NCBI RefSeq assembly: GCF_000142905.1
Contig: NW_013657659.1
Coordinates: 398,442 to 462,441 of the forward strand
Origin: Thecamonas trahens ATCC 50062
Taxonomy: Eukaryota > Protista > Apusomonadida
DNA: 64,000 nucleotides
Reading direction: 5' to 3'
Shown here piece by piece: positions 45,760-62,922 of the stretch (its first letter is position 1; every line of letters starts with the position of its first letter). Position numbers and translations under genes: made by a program. The notes under the pieces were generated by a model that worked only from the letters and a program-made list of their open reading frames with translations, was not told the origin of the DNA and did no database searches.

Positions 45760-47819
45760 TTAGCTTGTCGGCTGCTGCGAGGTCTCGCCGTCGTACTGGT
45801 ACTGGTACTCGTAGGTGGAGTGGTACTCGTACTCGACCGAGGCCGAGGTCTGGCGTGCGGGCGAGGAGAGGCCAACGTCTTCCTCGCGGTCGGCCGGGGT
45901 CGAGTCGCCGCCGGCAGGCATGGCAATGGAGGAGCCTGCACCGGAGTGACCGTAGGTGGCAAGGACCTTGCGGCGAGTGCGCTTGCCTTTGTGGCCTGTG
46001 CGGCGCGGGTGGTGTGCGGGCGCGGGCGAGAACGACGAGGCCGACGAGAGGCGAGCCGGGGCGGCGTCGGGCGACGAAGAGGACGAGGCGCGGGGCGGGT
46101 GGAGGTGCGGGTTGTGAAGGACACGCTCGGCCGAGGCGGAGGACGGGCGGTGGGGGGCGGTGCCTGCGGCCGGGTCCGGGCGGTGGTGGTGGCGGGCATC
46201 GCAGCTGTTGTTGCCGTCTTGGTCGTCGTCGTCAGCGTTGGTAGCCGAGGCCGAGTCGGACGACGAGAGAGCAAATCGCTGTGGGTCCGAGAGCGGGAGC
46301 GGGTTGTGGGGCGAGACGGTGGCGTCGGGCGGCGGCGGGCAGAGGGCCGGGTCGTCGGGCGGGGGGGCGGTGGCGGTGTCGATGGAGCGGAGCATGGCGT
46401 CGTCTTCGGGCGAGCGGACGGCGTCAAAGTACGGATGGAGGAGCGCATCGCGAGCAGTGATGCGGAGCTCCGGGTCGTAGACAAAGATACGGTTGAGGAG
46501 GTCGATGGCTGCGTCCGAGACGGCGGGGCGGCCGCCGCGCGGGGCAAGCGCGGCGAGGTCGAGGCGCGAGCGCGAGCAGCCTGCGCGCTGGAAGAGGCGC
46601 AGCGGAAAGATATGGGTGTAGGACATGTACTTGGAGTACTTTTTGAGGAAGCGGACATAGTCGTCGACGCCGAGAATGGAGACGATGGAGACCATCTGGT
46701 TCTTGTTCCACTCGATCTTGTCGTCGTCCTTGGGGCAGGGAAAGAACGGGTAGCGGTTGAAGAGCAGAGCGCCCATGATGCAGCCAAAGGACCAGACGTC
46801 GGTAGCGTAGTCGTAGTACTTGTAGTGGAGGAAGAGCTCGGGCGACTTTGTGTAGCGGGTGCCCGGCCAGCGGGCGAGCTTAACGCCGGCCCAGTAAAAG
46901 GCGGCAAAGCCCCAGTCGATGAGCTTGAGCTCGCGGGTCTTGGGATTGTACAGGGTGTTGGTCGGCTTGACGTCGAGGTGCATGATGCCGAGGGCGTGGG
47001 TAAAGTGCAGGGCGCGGAGGAGGGCGTAGAGGTACCACACGCTCTCATCCGGTTTCATGCGGGCGTACAGCTTGGCACACGGCAGCGGCTGCTTGATGTA
47101 CTCAAAGACAATCATGGCGAGGTCGCGCTTCTTGTCGCGGACAAGGTCGAGGAAGCGGATGATGTTCGGCCCGTCGCTGACCAGCTTGAGGTTCATGATC
47201 TCCATCTTGAGGCGCTTGGTGTTGGCCTTTTCCGGCTTCATGGTCTTGACCACCACCTTTTCGCCCGACGGCATGTGAGTAGCCATGTACACGGCGCCAT
47301 ACGAGCCCTCGCCGACCTTCTTGGACCAGTGGACCTTGTACGCCGACCGCTTCCCCCACCGAATGTTGTACGTCCGCGACTTGAATCGCTCCTCGGGATA
47401 CCGCGCATTGACATAAGTGTAGATCGAGGCCTTGTACTGCGGCGGGATCTACGCAGAGAGCGAGAGGGTGACGGAGAGCAAGAGCGAGAGTGAGTCTGTT
47501 GCGCCCAGGCCCCACCCTGGTGGGTAGGGTGTGGTGTGTGTGTGGGGAGGGGGGGGAGGGGGGGCATGTATATGTATGCATGTATGCATGCGTGTGTGTG
47601 TGTGTATCTGTGTGTATGGTGTGCGGGTGTCCCCCCCCCCCCTCCCTTCCTCTCTCTCCCCCCTCCCTCCCCTTTGTTCGTGTCTCCCCTACCCCCCTTT
47701 GTTCGTACCGTCGGCGGGTCATCCTCGCCCTCCTCCCATGACGAGTCGTACGAGGACGAGCCCAGCCATTTTGACGAAGGAGGCTTGGCACCCAAACAGC
47801 ACCATAACGAAGAGAACAT
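45760..47819 (-). CDS. Divergent casein kinase II alpha-like kinase; intron 47449-47708
   Basis: [16 protein letters not shown]; GEGSYGAV; [13 protein letters not shown]; HLDVKPTN; LIDWGFA; [26 protein letters not shown] intron in phase 0. Confidence 0.87.
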
Positions 47820-48311
47820 TCCCCTTGTGCTCTCCTTCCCACGCCTGCCGTAGTGGAGAGGTGCTCTCACCCTCACCCTCACCTGCTGCTGCTGCGTGTT
47901 GTCGCTGCCACTGCTGGCTGGCTGGCCACGGCCGGGCTCGAAGCTGCTTATCAACCACTCGTCGGCCAAGCCCACCACCCTGCTCATCATCGCGTGTGCT
48001 GGGGACGATTTCAGATGCGATCGGATAGTTTTGTGGCAGGTGTGGTGGTGGTTGTGGCCGCGGTGGGATTGGATGGAGGCTGTGTGTGTGTGTGTGTATG
48101 TGTGTGTATGTGTGTGTGTGGGTGTGTGGGTGTGTGTGAGCGCATGGCGGGGTGTGGCAGCGTTTCTGTCGAGCGAATGTTCGAAGCTCCCATTGATTCT
48201 CGGATTGATGGACAAGAAGTCGATCACGGACGTCAGCCCCACCCCCGCCCCCCCTCCCCCGGACCGGTCACCGCACTCCTCTCTCTCTCTCTCTGCTGCT
48301 ACTCACACACC

Positions 48312-49340
48312 ATGGCGGCCAAGGAGCAGATTGTGGTGATGGGCATGGAGGGCTCTGCCAATAAGATCGGTGTGGGCCTTGTGACAGCCGACGGAGTCAT
48401 TCTCTCCAATGTCCGCAAGACCTACGTGACACCCGCCGGCGAGGGCTTCCTCCCGCGACACACGGCTGCGCATCATCGGTCGGTGGTGGTGGGCCTGGTG
48501 GAGGATGCGCTCGCCGAGGCCGGGCTGACGCCTGACAGGGTTACGGCCATTGCCTTTACCAAGGGTCCGGGCATGGGCGCGCCGCTGACGGCTGTGGCTG
48601 TGGTGGCGAGGGTCCTTTCGCAGCTGTGGGGCAAGCCGCTGGTGGGGGTCAACCACTGCGTGGGCCACATTGAGATGGGCCGGCTCATCACCAAGGCAGC
48701 GAACCCGACGGTGTTGTATGTCTCTGGTGGAAACACCCAGATTATCGCCTACTCGATGAGCCGCTACCGCATCTTTGGCGAGACCATCGACATTGCGGTC
48801 GGCAACTGCCTCGATCGCTTCGCCCGTATCGTCGGCTTGCCGAACGACCCGTCGCCGGGCTACAACATCGAGCTGGCTGCTCGCGACGGCTCGACCTTTA
48901 TCGAGCTGCCATACGTGGTCAAGGGTATGGACGTCTCGTTCTCCGGCCTGCTCTCCTACCTCAAGGCCGCCACTCCCCAGCTGCTGGAGAGCGGCAAGGC
49001 GACCGTGGCCGACCTCTGCTTCTCGCTGCAGGAGACCGTCTTTGCCATGCTCATCGAGGTTACCGAGCGTGCCATGGCCCACACCGGATCGGACGAGGTG
49101 CTCATTGTGGGCGGCGTCGGCTGCAACAAGCGACTGCAGGACATGATGGGCGTTATGGTGGCCGAGCGGGGCGGCACCCTCTATGCCACCGACATGCGCT
49201 ACTGCATCGACAACGGCGCCATGATTGCCCAGGCCGGCCTGCTCATGTACCAGCACGGCCTCACCACTTCGCTCGACGAGTCGACGGTCACGCAGAGGTT
49301 CCGCACCGACGCCGTCGACGTGGTGTGGCGGAGTGACTGA
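48312..49340 (+). CDS. OSGEP: tRNA t6A threonylcarbamoyltransferase Kae1 (KEOPS)
   Basis: [12 protein letters not shown]; [11 protein letters not shown]; LYVSGGNTQ; IDNGAMIA; [13 protein letters not shown]. Confidence 0.97.
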
Positions 49341-49355
49341 CGAGATGAGTCTGCT

Positions 49356-52300
49356 TCATTCGCTGCGGTGGGAGAGCGCCGGCCCAACCAGCCGCGCAAA
49401 GTCGTCAAAGGCGACCACGCCCTGGCGCGCCTCGTCCATCTCGCGGAAGAGTGCCCGCGCCACGGCTGGCGCAATCCGGAGGCCGAGCCGACTCAGCCCG
49501 GCCTCGAACGCTCCCAGAGTCAGCGAGCCGGCGGCGTCAGCGTCGAGCGCGGTAAAGGCGTCGAGGAGGTACCAGTTGCGGGCGTGAATGGCCCAGGCCA
49601 GCCGCGCGAGCGCAGCCGCCACATGCAGGACACTGACCTCGGTCACAATCCCGAGGACCGTCTCTAGCGAAGGCGGTGAAGCGGTCTGCCGGCGGCGGCG
49701 GACTGCGCGCGTGGCTGCGAAAAAGTCGCGCCGGGCTCCGACCTCGCTCCGCTGCAATGCGCGGAGCGCCGAGTTGCGGGCGAGGAGGCCAAACTCGACG
49801 TCACCGTCAAAGAACCGCAGCGCGCCCGACGCAAGGTCTGCCTGTGACGGCGGCGGTGGCGCGTAGCCTGCGGTGGCGTCGAGAACAAGCTCGCTCTCGG
49901 CGCCGATCCGGAGCGCAAAGTACCCGCCGCCGCCCATGGCCGCGGTTCCGGCTGTCCGCGCCGAGTGAACCAGCGCCCGCAGCGCCGCGGCCTCGTCGAG
50001 AGTCACAAGCACAAAGTACCGCCCACCTTGCTCGCGGTAGTACGCATGCGCCGCTAGCACTTGTGCAACCTCAGCCTCGCTCCTCCCCACGCTCGCCTTG
50101 ATCCACTCGAGCATGCCGGCAGAAGCCTCGGCCTCTACGTGGACGTCGAGTGCGTCGAGGAGCGCGTTGACGCCGGCTGGGCCGAGCTCGCGCCGCCGCG
50201 GCTCGCCGTCCATCTCAACAAGGAGGCCGAATGCGTTCTCAAACTCGGCGCGGACCTCGGTCCCGCGCTCCAGGTGAGGAACTCGGCGGACCCCGCCCGA
50301 CGCGCTCGATGTGCCAGACCCGTCGAGCTCGCTCGCCCGCGGGACTACCTCGAGCACCACGATCTTGTTCTTGAGCCGCCGCGCCGAGCCGGTCCAGCTC
50401 GGCTTGTAAAAGTTCCGCGAATGCAACAGGTAGCCCGGAAAGGCAAGTTGCGGACAGCGGGCGTCGAGGCGGAACGTCTCCAGTGGAATGAACGGGTGCG
50501 AGGCCGACGAGTTGGGCGGCTGCGAGAGCGACGCGCGCGGCCACGGCGCCGGGCCCTCGTCTGCACGCGAGTACCGGAGCGATGCAAACCGTGCCGTCTC
50601 CTGCTCGCGCTCCTTCTCGACCTGCATCTCCTGCTCTTGCTCTTGCTCTTGCTCTTGCTCTTGCTCTTGCTCCTGCTCCTGCTCTTGCTCCTGCACCGCG
50701 TCGAGCATCCGTAAGTCCGGCCCGCCGCTGGGCGAGCCGTCGCTGCTCACGGCGCGCGACCGGATGAGTGCACCGAGCGTCTCGCGCTCGTCAGCCGAGG
50801 TGAGGAGCGGGCCAAAGCGAGAGGCGAGTGACTTGACAAAGGCGACAAAGCCGGTCTCGCCTGGCGGGGCGCCACCCGGTGCGGCGCTCAGATCGTGGCT
50901 CACGCTCTCGCGGAAGACCTCGATAGCCAGCCGAGTCTCTTCCTCGGACGCGCCTGGGGTGGCAAGCACTTTTGCCGCGGCCTTGCGGTAGACGTTGGCG
51001 ATGCACTGCTCAGCGAGAAGCGCAGCCTGCAGGCCCTGCGAGGCAATCGAGTTGGCGAGGAGCCATGCGACGATGCAGGCAAGGTCTAGCCGCGGCTGGA
51101 TGGCGACGATGCGGGCCTCGAGCTGCGGGACAACCAGGACGTGGAGCCGCTGGCCTGCGCCGATGCCGCGCATGCGGAAGGCAGCCTGTGCGTAGTCGCG
51201 GAACGTCATATCCTTACCAAGCGTGAGGAGCGCGACGGCGGTCGGAGCCTGGGCAATGTCCATGCCTGTGGTGTGGACCTGGTCGTAAAAGGTGAACAGC
51301 CGCCGTGGCTCGACGCCGCAGTGGGCGAGGTCGACAACGGTGTACTTGGCGCCTCCAGAGACGGGCTCGTCCGGAGCCGGCCCACGCGCGACGGCGTCCT
51401 CGTCGACCGAGTGGACACGGAGCACCACTTTCTTGGCGTCGGCCTCGTCGAGGAAGACCACGCCAGCGCAGTGGGCGAGGCCAGCGTCGAGGAGGTAGAC
51501 CGCCACCTCGAGGTTGGACATGCCGGTGATGAGGGCGCCGGCGTCGATGAGCGCGTTGTACCGCGACTGCGCTGCGAGGCTGTCAAGGAGCGAGGCAGGC
51601 GTCCAGTCTGTCGGAGCGGCGACGAGCGACATGACGTTTCCCGACGTGAGGAGGTTGATCATCTTGCCGTCGTCACCAGCTTCGTAGCGACACGAGCCGA
51701 ACTCGCGCGGGAGCAGGTCCGATGGCGTGCCCGAGAACCCGAGGCGCGTGCCAAACAGCATCTCGCCGCCGAGCTCCTGGCCTGACGCCGAGAGCTTGAG
51801 CGGCTGGAAGGTCATGGTTCGTGGGAAAACAAAGGTGTCGAGGTAGTAAGCGATGGCGGCCGGTGACTTGGCCAAGAGTGCGTACATGGTCTCCATTTGC
51901 CCTGCATCGCGCGGGTTGAGCAGATGCAGCGGCCAGAGCTCGTCGTCCCACTCGGCAAGCTCTGCGGCGGCAGCACCGGCTACAGCAGCATCAGCAAAGG
52001 CGGCAGCAGATGCGGCGTCCGAGCTGGAGGCACCTGTAGGCGACGCCAGCCGCGCAAATCGGTCGGCATCTGACACACCGGCACGGAGCGAGCCAGCGAG
52101 TTTGCGAAGGTGGGCATAGCCGCGGACAGTCTTGCCGGCGGCGGCCACCCACTTGGCGTACATGATGGACGTGCGGCGGGTGAGGTAGGGGCCCGACTCG
52201 GCAGCCATCGACTCGCGGAGGACCGAGATGAGGGTGGCAAAGTCTGAGGAGCGGAGGCCTTCGTAGGTGTAGGCGAGGATGGTGAGGCCGATGGCGACTT

Positions 52301-55300
52301 CGGCGTGGGAGAACTCGTTGGTGCGAGAGGCCACGTCCTTGCCCACAAACGGCACCGCGAGGTACTTGCGCGTCTTGGGCATGGCGGCGAGGTAGGCGGC
52401 CGGAGCAGCGGCCTCTGCCGACGCCACCAACCGGCGCAGGTCGTGCGAGCGGAGGAGGCCGAACGAGACCCGATCAACCTTGCTCAGAATGTGCGGCAAG
52501 AAGTAATTGAGCCAGTCATGTGCCAGGTTGAGGACCTTGATGGCGTCCGGCTCACACGCTGTGGCAAGCGCAGCAACGACCCGGTTGGTGTCAACAGCAC
52601 AGTCGTCGCGGAACAAGAGGTAGTGGGTCAGCTCGCTCGCTGAGAGCGGCGCGCCCGAGCCGCAGAGTCCGCAGCCGTCTGCGAGCCAGACCCCGGCCCA
52701 CTCGACGAGAATCGGCTTGAGGCTGGCGTGGTAGTAGGACTTGGCGAGCAGGACCACATGCGGGTTCGTCTGCAGCGCCATCTGCGACTCGCCGGAGAGC
52801 AGCGCGGCGGTGAGGTTGTGCAGGATGTCGACAGCACGGCGCGAGTCGCGATAGCGCGGCGGTACGTCGAGGGCTGCCGCGGCAGCCACGCCCTCCAGCA
52901 GGTGCATCGGCAGCGCCCAGCGGGTACCGTCGTGAGCAAACTCGACCGGCTCTTGCTTGCCCATTGGCCAGTTGAGCTCTGACCTGAGCGGGTGCAAGAT
53001 GAGATCAACTTCGTCAAGCATGAGCACGCTCTCGCGGAAGATGGCGTTGACAGCCCGGGCGGTAGCGTGCTGCTCACGGAGCGCGACCGAGATGCCTGCC
53101 AGCGACGCAGGCGTCCCATCCCACTCGCGGGCAAACGACGAGAGCAGAGCGCAGCCGGCGTCGAGAAACTCGGCCTCGGAGCCGATGACCAGTCGGCCGC
53201 GAGCGGCATCACCCGGACTCGCAGCGAGGGCATGCGTCGGCTGCGACTGGCTCGACGGCTCGCGGGTGGCAAAGAAGAACGAGTGGACAGCGCGGCGTGC
53301 CGAGCGTAGCTTTGACGTGTCGGCAAGGACGCCGCGGGCCATGGCGGCTTCGACTGCCGGGGAAAAGTCGGCCAGGGCCGCGAGGACGTGTGATACCTCA
53401 ACAAGCTTGAGCTGGTACGACTTGATGGCGGTCGGGGTGGTGATGAGGACGGCGCCGCGGGCGCGCGCCAGGGTGAGCGCCTCGAGCAGCTGCGGCGCAA
53501 TGATCCGCGAGCGGTCAAACGCAAAGGTGTAGACCGGTTTGGTGACGACGGCGGCAAAGGCGGAGCGGAGGACCGATCGTGAGAACTCGAGGAGCGGCGC
53601 CGGCACAACTTGGACAACAAGCTGTGACGGAGAGGAGAGGACCAGCGCAAGCAGCGGCGCAATGACCGTCGTCTTGCCGGCACCCATGATCATCTGGTGA
53701 CAGAGCGACTGCGAGCACGACGCGGCGGCCACAAAGGTCCTCACAAGTCGGACTTGCGACGACCGGAGCAGAAGCTGGTTGAGGAACTCAAAGACAAGGA
53801 AGCGCGGGTCAAAGCAAAGCAGCGCCGACGAAGACTTGTGGCTCTCAAAGTACGTCCGCGGGGCGACGAGTTCGGCCGCGAGCTTAGAGCCTTTGAACAC
53901 GAGCTCCTGGATGAGCGCCGAGTCGAGCGCGCGGTTTGGCCGGTTCGACGCGTCGAGCATGTGGACAACCGCCGAGCCAAGCTCTGCGATGAGGCCCGAG
54001 GTAGCGGCAAGCGCGCGACCGACGTGGGCGACGCGGGAGGCGTGGAGCGCAGCAACGACAGTAAGTGAGAGGACACGGCGGAGGAGCGCGCGCGAGCCTT
54101 GGCTCGCCAGCCACGGGTTGAGCCGCTGGAGCGAAGCAGGCGCCTTGGTCGACATCAGCAGCTCAACGAGAGCTGGGAGCCGCGGCGACGGCTCGGTGCG
54201 CCCGAGCCTGGCGAACACGGTCGCCATGCCAGCGGCGGAGTCGTGCGGCGCGTAGTTGGCGGCGTCGACGGCGGCAGCGGCCGAGGCGGCAGCAGCAGCA
54301 GATGCCGTGGCGTGCGCCGCAAGCAGCTGTGCCTTGAGTGAGTCGAGGGCGGCGATGATGTCGGCTACGCGGGCGGCCTGAATGCTCGGACTCGCGCTTT
54401 CGATGCCAGACGACGGCGCGAGCGGCTCGAGCGCGGCGAGGCGGAGCGAAGAGGCGTCGCGGGCAGCGTAGGCAGCAATGTCGCCATTGAGCCGAGCAAG
54501 GAGTGCAGCGCCAACAGGTGAGTCTGCGCCTGGGACCGAGGCCGGGTTGAACGGCATGCTGCTCAACCGCGGTTGGCCATCGGCGGTTGACAGAACCATG
54601 TCCTCGACCCGCAGCAGCGAGGCGAGCGGAACCTGGGCGAGGGCCTGGAGCTCGGGGCCCGAGATGGCCAGGTCGGACGTGTTTGAGGCCGAAACCGGGC
54701 CGACAGTCCCGTTGCGCGAGCCGTAGTTGTCAACGACGTGAGCAAGGAGGCCCAGGGCAGCGGCACGTTCGCGCGCGAGCTGCGGCAGCGGCGCGACCGC
54801 GACCGGGTGCGAGGCCGGCAGTGGCCAGAGTGCCCAGCTCGCGACCGAGAGCGGAAGGCGCGGAAGGTTGGGCAGCGGGTACCGGGCTTCGGCAAGTGCT
54901 GCCGCCAGCGGCGCCACAAAGGCGTCAAATAAGGCCGCGGCGTCCTGCGCGAGAGCGGCAGCAGCCTCGGCGGATGAGCCCTGGTCGCCCGATGAGAAGA
55001 TCGAGATAACCGAGGTGAAGACCGACGAGTCGCGCTTGGCCTGTGCGGCGCGGACCTGGCGAGCGGCAGACTGGGCGAGGAGCGGCGGCTCGAGGGCTGG
55101 GAGTGCAGCAGTCTGAGCGGATGAGCGGGCGGCGGCAAGCTTGACGAGAACATGGTCAAAGAACGAGAGCGGCTCTGTCGGGTCGAGCGCAGCAGGACAC
55201 GTCATGTGGACATAGAGCGCAGCAGAAAGGAGAGGATCGTCCGACTCGAGGAGCTGCAGCGAGAGCGAGCAGGTGAGAAGCTCGTAGCAAAGAAGGAAAG

Positions 55301-58300
55301 CTGCCGGCGGCGATGGGAGATCGGCGGCCAGGAGGCTAGCAGCTGCCGTGCCGGTGATGGTGCGGTCTGCCGACCCGAGCGGGATCGGGCGGGAGTAGGG
55401 CGCCGCAACGAGGGCGCGTGCGGTGTCGAGCGTCGGGTCTGCGCTCGGTGCTGCGGCAGAGTATGCAGCGCGCGCGCGCGCGGCGGCTGTGGCGCGAGCG
55501 GCGGCGAGCTCGGCATGCTGGACCGCGCGCTGGACATGCGGGTACATGCCCGGGTCGGCAAGGAGCGCCGCGTGCGAAGCATGCGGCGAGAGGGCATGCG
55601 CCAGGAGCGAGTAGCGGTTGGCCATGTGGAGCGAGCGGCTCGGTAGCGAGTCGATGCCGAGGCCGCGGGCGTTCAGCCATGCATGGTAGAGCGAGAGCTC
55701 GGCGGCCGGCGCCAGCGCGAGATCGGCCGGAACAGCGAGACGGAGCTCGGCGTACCGCTGAAGCTCGGTACCGAGATCCCACGGGAGGATCGGGAGCGAG
55801 GCGGCCATGGCCGGGCCCTGCAACGCCGCAAGCGAGGCGTTGAGGAAAACAGCCGAGAGTGCGAGGCGAAAAGCGGTGGCGTCCGGAGAAGGCGGCGCCG
55901 AGGCAAGGACGGAGGTGAGGAGGGCAAACATCTTGGCTTCGAGCGGGGCAAAAACACCATCCGAGACCGCTGACTCGAGCGAGGCACGTGCAACAATGTA
56001 CTCGCAATGGGCGAGGCGAAGGGCGAGGAGGAAGAGGCCCGAGGCGAGCGAGGGCGGGACGAGGAAGGCGTTGGAGGCGTGGACACGGTAGAGGAACGAC
56101 TTGGTGTCGAGGCCGTCGATCCAGGCGGGCGGCGCCGATCGCCACAGAGTGTGGCTCGCCAGCGGCGCGTCTGGCGCTGCGGCGATGGCGGGAACGTGAA
56201 GCGCGGAAACAAGGACAAACCACGAGGCTGCAGCGTCGCGAAGGACGAGGGCGTGCGGAAGGGCGGCAAGGAGGCCAGCGAGCGCAAGCGGCAGGCGGGC
56301 GGCCGGCGACCAGTATAACCCAGCGTGGTCGCGTGAGACCAAGATCTTGGCGCCTGGTGCTGCATCGAGCTCGTCTTCCACCCGGAAGCGCAGGCCGAGG
56401 CGCGGGAGATCAACCGCGAGCGGCGCAAGGTCGAGGGGGCGGCCCAGACGAGGGTGTGGGAAGCGTCCTCAAGGCGGAGGAGGGCGGCAGCGAGCGAGGC
56501 AGCAAACGGCGTGGCCGATCCGGCGGCGCGGGCGTGATGGATGTTGAGCAGTACGACATGGTCTGGCAGGCTACGGAGGTCAGGCGGCGAGGGCATGAAC
56601 GCCTCACGGACTGCCGAGAGCGAAGCAGAAGAGATCGAGTCAAAACGGCGAACAACCGTGACAACGTGCGGGGCGAGGCCGAGGCCAAGGTCGAGGCTGT
56701 CGGCGGCGGCAGGGGCGAGAGGCTCGGCCCAGAGCTCGACGTGGACGAACGAGCGGGTGAGAGCCGGGCGGCGCGGGTGGCCGACAAGATGCCGGTTGCC
56801 GACTTGTTGCCAGAACTGGTAGTCGGCAAGGAGAGCGTCCGGAAGCGCGCCGTAGAGGCAGTCGTCCGGGATGAGGGTCTCGTAGGAGCCGCCGAGGTGG
56901 AGCATGTCAAAGCGACGGGTGATGACCAAGTCGGGCTCGCGAAGAGGCGGCGGGAGGCTTGGATCGCCGCCGGCAGTGGAAGTCGGGCCGGATGCGGTTG
57001 TGAGGAGCCGCGGGAGAGCGTGGAGGGCGAGCGGTGCGGACGAGGCAAAGCAAGCGAGCGATGGAAGACGCGGCCGACCGAGAAGACGTTGTAGACCGAG
57101 ACAAGGCGAGTGATGGGTGAGGCCGTGATGAGCTTGAGGGAGCTGTTGGGCCCAGAGGCGTAGGCCGCGAGAGGAAGCGGCGTGCCTGTGGGAGCGGTGT
57201 CTGCGAGCGGGAGGGCCCATGTTGTGCCCGGGAACCAGCGGGCGAGAATGGGTTCAAGCGCCGACCAGGCCCAGACGTATCGCGGCGGCAAGTGGTGGCT
57301 TGCGGCGAAGGAGATGGTGGTCTCCTGAGCGAGGAGGGCTGCGAGGAGCTTGGGGCCGCGGTCGTCCGGGGTGAGCCAGTGGGCGATGTCAAGCGGTGCG
57401 GCAAGAATGCGGTAGCGCGAGCGGGCGGCCGAGTGGTCGAGGGCGAGGCACTGGACGCGGGCACCGCCGACGGCCGGTTCACCGTATGCGGCGACAAAGT
57501 CTGGGGCGCCGCCGAGAGCTTCGGCAAGCATGGCCATCTCGCGGTTCTTCATGGTGAAGAGGCCGAGCTGGACGTTGACCTCGGTGCCGAGGTCGGGTGA
57601 GCAGGTGCGCGCGAGCCACGAGGCGTAGTCTTCACCGGGCTGGGCGCAGAGGTCAAGCGAGTCGGCGACGAGGGCAAGCTCGGCCTGTGGCACGAGGCGA
57701 CCGTGGCATCCAGGCAAGCCGATGTGGGTCCAGACCCGCGACGGCGGCGGAAGCGGATCAAGCGACGAGAGCGGCGGGCCGAGTGGGGCTGACTTGGCCA
57801 GGACGTTGGAGACGGCGTCCATGACGGACGAGGTGACGCTCTCGCCGGCAGCATCGAGAAAGGCAAGAATGGCGTTGCGCGACGAGTCAAAGAGGGTGTA
57901 GAGGGTGATGAGAGGGAGGCCACCGAGGGTGAGGCAAGCGTCATCGGCTAGGGCGGCGGCGGCGCGAGTCCGCTCCAGCGGGGCGTCAAGGTAGGGTGAG
58001 CCCTGGGTCGACGGCGGATCGAGGTTGAAGGTCAGGTTGGAGTTGATGAACAGCTGGGTGCGAGGAGGGTGACGACATGGGGCGCCGTGAGTGCGTAGGC
58101 CTCCAGATTGGAGATCGAGAGCGCGATGTGACCCATGACGGCGCATGCAACGTCGAGGTTGTGCTCAGCAAGCGCGCGGAGGCGCCATCGCTCGAGAATG
58201 CGGTAGATCTTGTCAAAGAGGAGCGAGCGAAGCTTGGCAGCACCCTGGGCGAGCAGGTGGAGACTCGAGTGGGCAAGAGCCGGCGGGGCAGCAAGGTCTC

Positions 58301-61300
58301 GGCGCGGAGCGCGGTAGGAGGCACTGGCAACGCGCGGGGCATCGTCGATCCAGGCATGATGGCGGAGGAGGGCGAGGACATGGGCCTCGACCTTGACGGC
58401 CAGCCTGATGAGGTAAAGAAGGACGGGTGAAGTGGTGGGGAGTAGCGGCCGGGATCGAGGTCGGCGGCGAGGACCAGAAGCTTGAGAACGGCCTCGAGGC
58501 AGAGGCGTGGCGAGTGGATGAGCTCGTTGAAGAGGAGGCCGTTGGAGGTGGCAAAGACCTCGGGCTGTTCGAGAGCCGGGATGGAGGCCGGGAGAGTGCG
58601 GGCACCCGGGGCGAGCCAGGCACCGGGCTCAAAGAGGGCGGCGTCGAGAACGGCCTGCAGCTCCGGGGCGGCGAGAGCGTAGACACGGGTCTCGTCGGCA
58701 AAGAACTGCATGAGGAGCGGAATGCGAAGATACGGCGCGGTGAGGGTCTGCAGCATCAGCTCCGAGTCGCGGGCGGAGAGGACGTCGCCGAAGGTGGGCA
58801 TGTCAACGATGTGGAGGACGTCGTCTTCGTTGACAATGAGGGGACGACGGCGATCAGCCGAATCGGGCAGGGTCGACGCCTTTGCGTCGGACGGGAGCAG
58901 AGCGTTAGGGTCTGCGGCCGAGGGCGCGATGCGCGGGGCGCGGCCGGACGGGTTTGTAAAGGTGCGAAAGTAGGCCGAGATGACCGAGGGGGTGTACTTG
59001 GACATGCCCTTGGCGATTTTCTGGCCGAGCGAGACGCACGACAGCTCCTTGCCACCAAATGCGGAGACCTCAAAGCCGACGGTGGGATCGAACGACCACT
59101 CGAGCGCCGCGTCGATGGGCCGCCAGGCAGCGACAGGTGGCAGGGTCTCGGACGACGGGACCATGAGGAGGCGAAAGGTAAAGACAACGTCGCGGAGGAT
59201 GCGGAACTCGGGAAAGTGGTCTACGAGCGAGCGGTCGATGCCGACAACGTATCGCTCGAGAGTGATCGAGTTTGGTGGACCGGTAGAAAAGCCAAGGGCG
59301 AGGCAGAGTTGCGAGACAAAGGCGGTGTCGCCCGGCGAGAGAAAGTTGGAGCCATCAAACGAGAACAGGTTGTGGTCTTCGGGCACAGCACGAGCGGTCG
59401 AGGCAAAGTAGTCGAGGAGGGCGGCGCGGGCGAGGAGAAGGTCGGGCGAGGCAAAGAGCATGGTCTCGGACTCAAGGGCGTAAAAGCCAATGGAAAAGCC
59501 AAACGGCGCGACAGGGCCGAGTGCGGCGCCGGCGTAGTGAAGCGAGACCGGCGACGGGCGGTCGCAGGCGACGATGCGGATGATACGGTCAGTGAGGGCG
59601 GCCATGCAACCAAGGGTGGTGATGCGGGTGGCATCAAGGAAGCGGTCGATGGGAAGCGCCAGCGCAGCCGACGCAAAGTGGCGCGAGAGCAGGTCGATGA
59701 GATGGAGGAGGCGGGCCTGGGTCTCGGCCCGCATGGGCGAGGCGAGCCAAAAGCACGATGGCGTTTGTGGAGCGTCGAGAGGAAGCGGGAGCGGAAGAAC
59801 TGAGACAAAGAGGCGAGCAATGAGGGTGACCCGGATGAGGTACCCGTTCTTGACCTGTGCACCTTGGTTGGCGAGGAGAATCGAGGCATCGAGGGTATGC
59901 CGGAGCGCGTCGAGCGCATCATCGAGGCTTTCCACGGTAAGCGGAACGTCCGAGAGCTGGACTGGGCGGAAAATGGGAGGCAGCGGCGCACCGCCAGCGA
60001 GAGAGGCCGTGTCAAACGGATCGATCAGATGGGCGAGGTTCGGGAAGTCGGTGAGCGAGGCCGAGGCAGGCATGCCAGACACTGGGCTCGGGAGCACCGT
60101 GTGAGCGGCAGTGTGGAGGCTCGCGAGATGAGCTGCAATATTGGTGAGCGAGGTGAGTGTGGCGAGCTGGATTTCGGCGGTGCGGGGAGACGGCGGAGTG
60201 TGTGCGAGGGAGCGCGCCAGCGACCGGGCGTAGACGTCGAGCCGCGTGGCGTCGGCGGCGTCGGTGGCGGCAAGAAGGTCGGAGTCGTCGAGTGGAAGAA
60301 GCGCCGAGTGGACGGCGTCGAGGAGGGCGTAGCCGAGAGACGATCGAAAAGCAGGCGGGTCGGGCGAAGCAAGAGCCAGGGCGGCGACAACCAGCTCGAC
60401 ATAGTGGGAGTCGGCCGGGACGGAGCCGGCGTCAAGCCAGAGCGGCGGCGGAGGCGGCGGACACGATCGGCAGGGGAGGCTCTGTGTGAAGCTCAGCAGC
60501 CTGGAGTACAGCAGATCGAGGCCAGCAGCAAACGAGTCCTGCTCTGTGACCATCGGGGTGTAGACGTAGTGCCAAAAGGCGCCCAGCAAGAGGCAGGATG
60601 CTGGGAGCGGGACCGAGAGCAGCGGCGAGAGCCGGAGTCGGCCGGTGGCGTCGTCGATGTCGTAGGCGTGGTAAGGGAGGGCAAGGCCGTCGCGGCGCAT
60701 TGTCGAGACGAGGGTGAGCCGAGCGTCGTGGGCCGAGGTTGTGACCAGAAGCAAGAGGCAGACGGTGTCGTCGGGCGTGGTGACGCCAGTAGGGACGATG
60801 ATCGACGCACCCGGCGGCATGGCGGCACAGAGGGCGACGGTGTCGGCGACGAGAGTGACAGTATGCGCCTGAGCGCGGAGGCCTGATGCGCCAGCCAAGG
60901 CAGATATGAGCGCGAGAGCCGTGGCGGCGGCCGGCGGTGGAGCCGCGAGGTGCTCGACAAGCGTGGCGAGGGTGTGGCGGAGACGGGCAAGGGCGAGGGA
61001 GCGGGTCTGCGGCTCGCGGGGAGCGGGACATACATGCGTCGGCGCAAAGAGGGCAGCGGTGATAGGAGAAGCAAGCAGCACAATCGGCGGCGGAATGGCA
61101 GGGCCCGGGTCCGGAGGCTGGAAGTGCAGCAGGAGAGGCGGCTCGATGCCAGCGAGTGTCGCATCTGGTGGCGCATTGGGTGTCGCGTCGGGCTGCGAAG
61201 GCTCGGACGAGACGGCGGAGGTGTCTGGCGCGGATGCGGGTGCATGCAAGGCAAGAACGGCACCAAGAGCTGGTGATGACGATGTTGCGTCGGCGGCAAG

Positions 61301-61501
61301 GAGATCGGTACCCCACTTTGGGCCCGAGGTCGACGGGTCGGCGGCGGCGGCGGCGGCAGCGGCGGCAGCTGAGGCGGCGGCCGAGGCAGCGGCGGCGGCC
61401 GAGGTGGATGTTCTTCCGGACGAGCCCGGTGTGTATTTGTTGACGGCCTTCTTGACGTTCTTTACCGTCCGTGTGAGAAAGTTGTCGGCGAGGAAGGACA
61501 T
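49356..61501 (-). CDS. Giant (~4050-codon) DUF3638/DUF3645-type P-loop protein with C-terminal EF-hands, interrupted by four 1-nt deletions
   Basis: Five successive reading frames each shift by one base (near 58438, 58057, 57048, 56437); restoring 4 nt gives 12150 nt. Motifs: HQMIMGAGKTTVIAPLL, LDEVD, LAVPFVGKD, GFSGT, QAAFRMR, (QE)n, DADAAGSLT and DEARQGVVAFDDF. Confidence 0.8.
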
Positions 61502-61586: not shown

Positions 61587-62600
61587 TTACGAGGGTGCGG
61601 CGGAGGCCGAGTATGTGGCATGGAGGCCAAAGTGGTCAGAGATGAAGATGGGGTGGTTGGTGGAGGCATGGTGGGCAAAGGGGATGGTGCCAAGCCGGTC
61701 AATGGAGGCTGGCGCGAAGCGCGAGGGCTGGAATAGGAGGATGCGATCGAGGCGTGCGTGCTTGGCAGTGGGCCGAAAGAGGGCGCGCATGATGTTGATG
61801 TCGGTGTCCTCGGTCCAGCCCGGGTCACCGGAGTGGAGCGTCGACCACGTGTCGAGTGAGACGTCGCGGAAGGCGGCATTAAGGGCCGAGTCGGCCGGGT
61901 CGAGCTCGGCGCACTCGTTGGTGTCGCCCATGAGCCACACGTCGTCGCCAGCGGCGACAAAGGTGGAGAGGCGGTCGATGAGGGCACGGCCCTGTAAGAG
62001 CCGCTTGTGATCCGAGCCGGCATTGACGGCAGACTCCATGTGGACGTTGCCGACAACCAGGCCGTGGCCATCGGGCGGGCCGAGGCGGACATAGAGCAGA
62101 TCGCGGCCCTGCTCAGTATCGGCAGGCGGGTAAGCCATGCGGACTACGTCGACGGGGAGGTCGACGCCCGGCCCGTCGAGCTCGGGCACCGCGAGACGGA
62201 CAAAGGTGACAGTAAAGTACCAGGCAAAGTGATCGTTTGGCGGCCACGAGCCGAGGTAGCGCGCGGAGAGCTCCGGATGAGCGAGCCACTGGGCCTTGAA
62301 CCAGAGGGTGGCTTCCTGGATGCAGACAAAGTCCGGGTCGGCAGCAAGGATGGCGTCGGCGAGAGCAGCAAAGCGAGCTTTGCGCTCGTACATCTCAAAC
62401 CAGATGTTATACGAGATGAACGATAGAGCTGAGGACGAGGACGACGAGGACGAGGCCGGCGTTGACAAGCGCGGCTCGTCACTTGTGTGCGACAGGGCGA
62501 CAGCGGCAGCCAGCCGCGCAGGAACACACACTGTCTGCTTCAGACCAGCACCGTCCATACTCTGGCTTTCACTCTCTGTCTTTGATTGGTTCTTGCCCAT
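61587..62600 (-). CDS. EEP-family phosphodiesterase, TDP2-like
   Basis: ISYNIW..R, PDFVCIQE, VHMES, MGDTN, RLDRI, ISDHFGL. Confidence 0.85.
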   Translation of the reverse strand: MGKNQSKTESESQSMDGAGLKQTVCVPARLAAAVALSHTSDEPRLSTPASSSSSSSSALSFISYNIWFEMYERKARFAALADAILAADPDFVCIQEATLWFKAQWLAHPELSARYLGSWPPNDHFAWYFTVTFVRLAVPELDGPGVDLPVDVVRMAYPPADTEQGRDLLYVRLGPPDGHGLVVGNVHMESAVNAGSDHKRLLQGRALIDRLSTFVAAGDDVWLMGDTNECAELDPADSALNAAFRDVSLDTWSTLHSGDPGWTEDTDINIMRALFRPTAKHARLDRILLFQPSRFAPASIDRLGTIPFAHHASTNHPIFISDHFGLHATYSASAAPS

Positions 62601-62922
62601 ACAACGGGGAAGGAGAGGGGAGGGGGGGGGGGAGGAAGGGTGAGAGAGGTAGTCTTCCATTCGAGAGTTCGAATGGCGTGTGGCCTGGCCGCCGTGTCGC
62701 AGACTTGGTGGTGGCGTGGCATGTTCGGTGGTGGTGGCGTGGCCCATCAGACGGCGAGTGCGGGAGGAGGGAGGAGGGAGGGAGGGAGGGAGGGAGGGAG
62801 AGGGTAGTGGTAATGGTACTTGACGTGCACGGGAGTGGAGGTCGAGAGTACTTGCTACAGACAGAGTAGCAGGTGGTTATTGTGCTGGATTGGTTGTGGA
62901 GGTCTCGGCTGGTGAACGGGGT

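Follow-up and report, generated by a model that had tools for sequence, protein, structure and literature searches.

A fragmented giant gene of Thecamonas trahens encodes a DUF3638/DUF3645 protein with a predicted SF2-type motor

Long stop-free stretches spread over three reading frames lie on the minus strand, from 62143 to 49359, of a 64,000-nucleotide stretch of the Thecamonas trahens ATCC 50062 genome (contig NW_013657659.1; the whole stretch is hereafter called the window, and coordinates refer to it). Do they belong to one gene and, if so, what would its product do? On balance, we favour a single intronless gene, broken in the assembly, for a cytosolic superfamily 2 (SF2)-type ATPase of about 4,050 residues from the DUF3638/DUF3645 family, which would act as a motor and scaffold and in which an N-terminal module and the EF-hand loops are degenerate. 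An initial annotation of this DNA had joined five pieces of open reading frame into one gene of 12.1 kb (~4,000 amino acids) with four single-base deficits, and had seen in its product a calcium-regulated giant translocase or ATPase.

The joining is borne out by tblastn with six full-length homologues, which resolved five collinear coding pieces (frame index 0>2>1>0>2). The gene, its pieces and the breaks between them are as follows:

61501 (ATG) to 49356-49358 (stop), minus strand: whole gene, about 4,050 codons, no introns
61501-58439, minus strand: piece A, 1021 amino acids, with a low-complexity Ala/Ser/Pro head (about residues 1-200), the N-terminal module and a conserved alpha-helical region
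58439-58059, minus strand: piece B, 127 amino acids
58056-57052, minus strand: piece C, 335 amino acids
57049-56435, minus strand: piece D, 205 amino acids
56435-49359, minus strand: piece E, 2359 amino acids, followed by the stop at 49356-49358
about 58437-58441, minus strand: break A/B, in the C run TCCCCACC, one base short
58057-58058, minus strand: break B/C, in the C run CACCCAG, one base short
57050-57051, minus strand: break C/D, at CTTGCTTTGCC, one base short, not in a C run
about 56433-56437, minus strand: break D/E, in the C run GCCCCCTC, one base short

The pieces sum to 4,047 amino acids, and no in-frame stop occurs in these 4,047 codons. Similarity to the homologues runs on at both sides of every break, with no loss of residues at the junctions. 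On homologue P0022, piece A covers residues 659-1549, B 1554-1645, C 1700-1984 and D 1986-2186, and E starts from residue 2206. Since the five pieces are collinear with single homologues and no residues are lost, the breaks are not introns and the region is one intronless gene. Moreover, in this region of 65% G+C, with genes on both strands and short spacers, the other stop-free stretches mostly measure about 90-400 codons, against 2,359 codons for piece E; an open frame of that length cannot arise by chance. All searches and folds were run piece by piece, and only the count of amino-acid composition pooled the pieces.

Piece E places the protein in its family and carries the motor. Indeed, Pfam recognises both DUF3638 (E 1.9e-25, residues 859-996 of a 2341-residue frame) and DUF3645 (E 1.5e-11, over the full 33-position profile) above their cut-offs, as the initial annotation had supposed from flanking signatures. 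No Pfam match was found on the other pieces, no NCBIfam match on the four stop-free frames that jointly span the gene, and no Rfam match in the window. The gene adds a new member to this known, uncharacterised family, and what follows on its function is what we infer. The features of the motor region are:

50886-54239, minus strand: motor core, 1118 amino acids modelled (RecA lobe 1, insertion, RecA lobe 2, long C-terminal helix)
53394-53807, minus strand: best stretch of Pfam DUF3638 (PF12340), 90 bits against a gathering cut-off of 31, containing Walker A
53670-53687, minus strand: motif I (Walker A), MGAGKT
53004-53018, minus strand: motif II (Walker B), LDEVD, whose D, E and D are invariant in a 27-sequence alignment (A1)
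52281-52376, minus strand: Pfam DUF3645 (PF12359), 43.8 bits against a gathering cut-off of 25, inside the insertion
51726-51740, minus strand: motif III-like GFSGT, with FSGTP invariant
51255-51284, minus strand: motif V, DQVHTTGMDI (motifs V and VI together span 51168-51284)
51168-51188, minus strand: motif VI, QAAFRMR, with its arginines
50628-50693, minus strand: acidic linker (QE)11, found at the equivalent place in relatives

Motifs I, II, III, V and VI thus follow one another in the order proposed by the initial annotation, and these motifs, the (QE)n spacer and the two EF loops all lie where it had put them. Across alignment A1, MGxGKT, DEVD, FSGTP, IDxGALxTG, FYDQxHTTGxD and Q.xxRMR are invariant or at least 90% conserved. 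Tandem RecA domains had been named beforehand as the structural test of the SF2 proposal, and the AlphaFold model of 54239-50886 (mean predicted local distance difference test, pLDDT, of 72) has two alpha/beta RecA-like lobes, with SF2 proteins as its structural matches. A mostly helical insertion of 425 residues (about 51741-53003) separates motifs II and III, and a 40-residue helix follows lobe 2.

The most conserved stretch of DUF3645 (GKDV.SR..EF.H..V) falls in a low-confidence loop of the model (pLDDT below 50, model residues 630-644), which may have a function and take on order only when a partner binds.

With Foldseek, every row returned for the core was an SF2 protein, and the best rows were DNMT5 (SNF2), UvrB and Cas3. 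Because the E-values were weak (best 0.0096), the fold comparison leaned on VIA-align. This second look gave SecA (6itc_A) at Z 15.7, with a root-mean-square deviation of 4.4 over 377 residues, and ALC1, SRCAP, SMARCAD1, CSB and DinG at about 15. A wide VIA-align search, independent of Foldseek, placed the motor of E. coli SecA (3bxz_B; Z 15.5, 345 of 440 residues aligned) ahead of ALC1 (15.3) and CHD4 (15.0). In the two VIA-align searches, the top 50 rows were SF2 motors with Z of 13-15.7, spanning both lobes. In sequence searches against the PDB, phmmer with piece E found only EF-hand proteins and a non-significant Snf5 match (E 0.12), and the core profile found only EF-hands, which stem from the flanks of the aligned relatives. 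Altogether, the model and the motifs show the core as a predicted SF2-type NTPase, with two tandem RecA-like lobes and a complete, ordered and conserved set of motifs, and from its sequence this motor appears functional.

Which SF2 motors does it resemble most, and what would it act on? Nominally, the top structural match is SecA (3bxz, 6itc, 1nkt), with Z of 15.5-15.7 over 345-377 aligned residues; these rows align more residues than the others and extend into the N-terminal helices and the helix after the lobes. The core and SecA have in common the DEVD Walker B and the G(M/F)(T/S)GT motif III, and the wording of the motifs is alike when set against E. coli SecA (xMxxGxGKT, DEVDxxLxxxxxxxLxxxG, G(M/F)(T/S)GT). 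Both also have a large insertion in the interval from motif II to motif III and a long helix behind lobe 2. The inserted domain of the core sits where SecA carries its preprotein-binding domain and differs from it in being mostly helical and about 425 residues long. Snf2 remodellers (ALC1 7enn, CHD4 6ryr, SRCAP, CSB) also align over both RecA lobes, with Z of 15.0-15.5 and about 335 residues. Their Walker B is DEGH/DExH, whereas the core has DEVD, and their large insertion lies between the lobes rather than between motifs II and III. No piece has a Pfam match to SecA, nor to SNF2, Helicase_C or DEAD at E of 0.01 or below, so that by sequence the protein belongs to neither group. Because less than 1 Z unit separates SecA from the Snf2-type DNA translocases, the substrate cannot be read from the fold, and our claim is limited to an SF2 motor with SecA-like features, short of SecA membership.

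The domains that accompany the motor in other family members bear on the substrate. Our protein search (word-indexed) found at least 152 relatives, with E down to 4e-208 and a best identity of about 40%, in oomycetes, diatoms, a labyrinthulomycete, haptophytes, dinoflagellates, kinetoplastids and an amoebozoan. Many of them are 3,500-4,100 residues long, and the T. trahens protein is collinear with such relatives over all five pieces. In a manual tally over 120 listed relatives, about 36 have EF-hands, 19 UBA-type domains, 19 thioredoxin-like domains and 11 RanBP2-type zinc fingers; SH3, WW, SPRY, AZUL, WWE or Vps62 domains occur in a few. The same 120 relatives have no RRM, KH, dsRBD or HTH domain, and the nearest to nucleic-acid binding are the RanBP2-type zinc fingers and one weak Tudor_5 match below the cut-off. 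These partner domains, together with the peptidase-like N-terminal module of the family (see below), favour a protein substrate: by analogy, the motor would more likely act on protein, possibly marked with ubiquitin, than on nucleic acid.

A nucleic-acid motor, i.e. a Snf2-like double-strand DNA translocase or an RNA helicase inside a giant scaffold, is nonetheless a serious rival, although we regard it as somewhat unlikely. ALC1, CHD4, SRCAP, CSB, INO80, DinG, Hel308 and DEAD-box proteins all score within 1 Z of SecA, and the best Foldseek rows belong to motors of this kind. Against it stand the lack of Pfam SNF2, helicase-C and DEAD matches on all pieces, the lack of typical nucleic-acid-binding domains in the listed relatives with the exceptions just given, and the position of the insertion, which is that of SecA and differs from what is generally known of Snf2.

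A second alternative concerns the C-terminal end of the protein, where the following feature is found:

49386-49568, minus strand: degenerate EF-hand pair (loop 1 at 49509-49544, loop 2 at 49401-49436)

If this pair bound calcium and switched the motor, the protein would be the calcium-regulated translocase of the initial annotation. The pair is indeed recognisable by sequence (phmmer against the PDB, E 3e-5 to an ALG-2-like protein), and many relatives have canonical loops. In the T. trahens copy, however, Ala stands at ligand positions 5 and 12 of loop 1 (DADAAGSLTLGA) and at ligand position 3 of loop 2 (DEARQGVVAFDD), while in the 27 aligned relatives, most of them canonical, these positions are mostly Asp/Asn/Ser and Glu/Asp. 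Furthermore, EF-hand_7 scores 22.6 bits on piece E, below the Pfam cut-off of 30, and the oxygen ligands expected of a calcium sensor at loop positions 1, 3, 5 and 12 are incomplete. Judging from these loops, calcium control is plausible for the family and is not supported for this copy; a calcium-switched translocase is here improbable. Of the earlier proposal, the giant SF2 motor is borne out by model and motifs, and its regulation by calcium finds no support in this copy.

We then have to ask whether the gene is alive. All four breaks are deficits of one base, three of the four lie in C runs, and all fall within 2 kb (56435-58439). Two paralogues in the same genome (L004, G000:C12, ~685-694; L001, G000:C14, ~2178-2202) have similar breaks at short homopolymers, with GGAAAGAC for the expected GGAAAAGAC and AAGACC for the expected AAGGACC (AAA for AAAA, G for GG). 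The six breaks inspected, four here and two in the paralogues, are thus all one-base deficits, and those of the paralogues are in line with a systematic assembly error. From this pattern, the four breaks are most likely errors of base-calling/sequencing or assembly. In a true pseudogene, the four frameshifts would exist in the organism and the gene would be dead, and their packing within 2 kb could be taken that way. We consider this very improbable: 4,047 codons are free of in-frame stops, similarity to the homologues spans each break, and the breaks are all of one kind, three of them in homopolymers, a kind that recurs in two paralogues. Programmed ribosomal frameshifting or another recoding, by which real breaks would be read through, is most improbable even though all the breaks shift in one direction, because no slippery heptamer or other motif is common to the four sites, so many shifts in a single gene would carry a high cost, and the homopolymer link points to base-calling.

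The N-terminal part of the protein was described in the initial annotation as some 2,500 uncharacterised residues. This proved too weak a statement, since the N-terminal ~2,500 residues are conserved throughout the family and begin with a candidate thiol-enzyme module, which in this copy is degenerate:

60389-60802, minus strand: degenerate N-terminal module

Among 1.84 billion representatives, a profile search located the module in 2,628 clusters (50% identity), mostly at the extreme N-terminus of proteins of 3,000-4,700 residues. PGGW, GGH, N.G.G, YH and Q.SGTC are nearly invariant in it. Its family motif reads PGGW ... N.G.G..YH, and GGH and Q.SGTC are also found in the module of the bacterial members described below and of one eukaryotic relative (P0052). 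Residues were counted in 158 sequences, made up of the best 150 of the 2,628 cluster matches and a few earlier relatives: the first His is present in 151 of 158, the Asn in 156, the second His in all 158, the Gln in 152 and the Cys in 148, and His, Asn, Gln and Cys occur jointly in 144. The order of these elements is His strand, Asn strand, Gln-x4-Cys. In the model of piece A (residues 190-1021, pLDDT 70), which consists of a small alpha/beta module followed by a mostly helical part, the position equivalent to the Cys lies at the N-terminus of helix 176-189. This order and this position are what would be expected of a His-first cysteine peptidase, either CE-clan-like or permuted papain-like. 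We infer that the family module is cysteine-peptidase-like and a candidate for an undescribed thiol-enzyme domain.

In the T. trahens copy, the His, Asn, Gln and Cys columns hold Val, Ser, Gly and Ser, and only the second His, that of YH, is kept. Over the motifs, IIVPTGV replaces PGGW, CLLLLV the His strand, TLVST the Asn strand and GSVPADS Q.SGTC. The module of the paralogue on contig 8 is without Gln and Cys.

Among the protist relatives closest to this gene (e.g. P0055, P0080 and P0046, in the N-terminal ~140-330 residues), most have Ser, Ala or Gly in the Cys column, the first His is frequently missing, and a Cys stands directly before the conserved Asn (VCNxGxG). This pattern could be a rearrangement of the active site or a loss of activity. 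We considered this Cys as the catalytic residue and dropped it, as Thr, Ser and Ile occupy the column in a paralogue and in bacteria.

More than 20 relatives bear the automatic UniRef name 'ubiquitinyl hydrolase 1' (another such name is 'NXN protein'), which would make the protein an active deubiquitinase. The peptidase-like His/Asn/His/Gln/Cys set of the family module would agree with this name. We find it hardly credible for the present copy, in which four of these columns are changed; a Pfam peptidase domain is found in none of the 120 listed relatives and not in this protein, and no link to a known peptidase came out of the searches. Indeed, the module profiles had no match among PDB sequences or with E. 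coli ElaD, a CE-clan peptidase; Foldseek and the wide VIA search with the 832-residue N-terminal model, which holds this degenerate copy of the module, gave no fold match beyond helical repeats and three-helix bundles of a generic kind (Z of 8.5 at most). Pfam has no model for the module, and five copies of it, read down to an E of 10, gave nothing credible.

If the favoured reading of a fragmented but coding motor-and-scaffold gene holds, the protein could work as follows. ATP would bind in the cleft between the RecA-like lobes, and its hydrolysis would drive their opening and closing. In this way the motor would advance along a polymer or tug at it, while the inserted domain and the helical scaffold around the motor keep hold of that polymer. 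Because the module has lost all but one His of its residue set and both EF loops have lost ligands, this copy would work by its motor and scaffold, with neither thiol-enzyme nor calcium-sensing activity.

Several points weigh against this reading or parts of it. That the four breaks are errors is judged from the assembled sequence, which makes it most likely and falls short of proof. To the tie between SecA and the Snf2-type translocases is added the result of hhalign, in which the core profile (A1) shows no relation to E. coli SecA (probability 0.2%). The argument from partner domains is one of association, and RNA is also among the ligands of RanBP2-type fingers. The peptidase-like character of the family module is drawn solely from conserved residues and the order of secondary structure, and the searches described above gave no match for it. 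Finally, biochemical data for any family member were not found in the searchable literature. To the extent that the literature was accessible, we also found no functional study of DUF3638, DUF3645 or DUF6606; the papers that mention DUF3638/DUF3645 merely list the domains as uncharacterised. The paper on the VTD deubiquitinase (PMC9741609) deals with a different family.

The family is not restricted to protists. Searches with the core profile found giant DUF3638 proteins, of ~3,200 to more than 4,500 residues, in Legionella quateirensis, L. worsleiensis, L. moravica and L. bononiensis, and in metagenome-assembled genomes (MAGs) of Legionellaceae, Francisellaceae and other gammaproteobacteria (e.g. 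L027:241-12666, among L018-L030), as well as a version of 1,052 residues in a Rhabdochlamydiaceae MAG. The frame of L. quateirensis has 4,141 residues, with DUF3638 at 1919-2123, and its residues 97-155 are 37% identical to a eukaryotic N-terminal module; one cluster of the module includes an NCBI 'DUF3638 domain-containing protein' of Legionella maceachernii. As far as can be judged from these sequences, the occurrence of such giants in intracellular bacteria, Legionella and its relatives, suggests that genes were exchanged with protist hosts.

A contig of 9,947 bases labelled as an Anaerolineaceae MAG (PABI01000099.1, L017) is a single frame of 3,315 codons, 41% identical to the core. It appears to be eukaryotic sequence that was assigned to a bacterial MAG in binning. 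In T. trahens itself, the 28.7-Mb genome has six DUF3638 loci, and the other loci are 35-48% identical to the core described here.

On both sides, the giant gene has close neighbours:

48312-49340, plus strand: Kae1/TsaD gene (Pfam 264 bits), convergent with the giant gene, the stop codons of the two lying 15 bases apart
61587-62747, minus strand: gene of the endonuclease/exonuclease/phosphatase family (Pfam 40 bits), ending 85 bases upstream of the start codon of the giant gene

Two (GT)n microsatellites lie upstream of the Kae1/TsaD gene, at 47592-47605 and 48082-48097. With such neighbours, and with no PADLOC match on pieces A, C, D and E (B, of 127 amino acids, being left out), nothing suggests a defence system. 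The initial annotation had seen here the best candidate for an undescribed system, possibly of defence; besides the PADLOC result, public databases already contain many proteins with this EF-hand architecture.

Taken by itself, the gene is an ordinary member of a family listed in the databases, and its fragmentation is most likely an assembly artefact. The family is of wider interest, as it supplies some of the largest proteins of many protists. Its SecA-like topology, the conserved set of N-terminal residues and the giant bacterial members may be undescribed, no paper on them having been found in the part of the literature that was accessible. We can also propose, as a speculative and rather unlikely extension, that the giants form an undescribed class in which a thiol peptidase-like module, a helical scaffold and a SecA-like SF2 motor would carry out ATP-driven processing of proteins, possibly ubiquitin conjugates, the present gene being a pseudo-enzyme paralogue. 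If true, this class would be common to many protists, fungi and amoeba-associated bacteria (Legionella, Francisellaceae and Chlamydia-like bacteria). In either case, the record of which parts are intact and which degenerate in each paralogue guides the choice of the copy for each assay.

Compared with known systems, the protein can be placed as follows. SecA is the partner of a membrane channel, whereas this protein is predicted to be a eukaryotic cytosolic giant. The C-terminal helix-loop-helix pair resembles by sequence that of ALG-2/PDCD6-like proteins (PDB 1y1x) but differs from such pairs in that both its loops are short of ligands and its Pfam score is below the cut-off. With the DUF3638/DUF3645 giants of protists and fungi, it has in common the acidic linker, the conserved region after the motor and the C-terminal EF-hand pair; it differs from them by lacking partner domains of the UBA, zinc-finger, thioredoxin and SH3 types, and by the degeneration of its N-terminal module and of both EF loops. 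Finally, the bacterial giants have the same plan, with the N-terminal module, about 1,900 residues and then the DUF3638 motor (GxGKS, SGTP, HTTGIDI, Q..R.R). Their motor is 26-29% identical to that of T. trahens and the region of the DUF3645 insertion is short or divergent, and, unlike in this copy, their N-terminal His/Asn/Gln/Cys set is intact.

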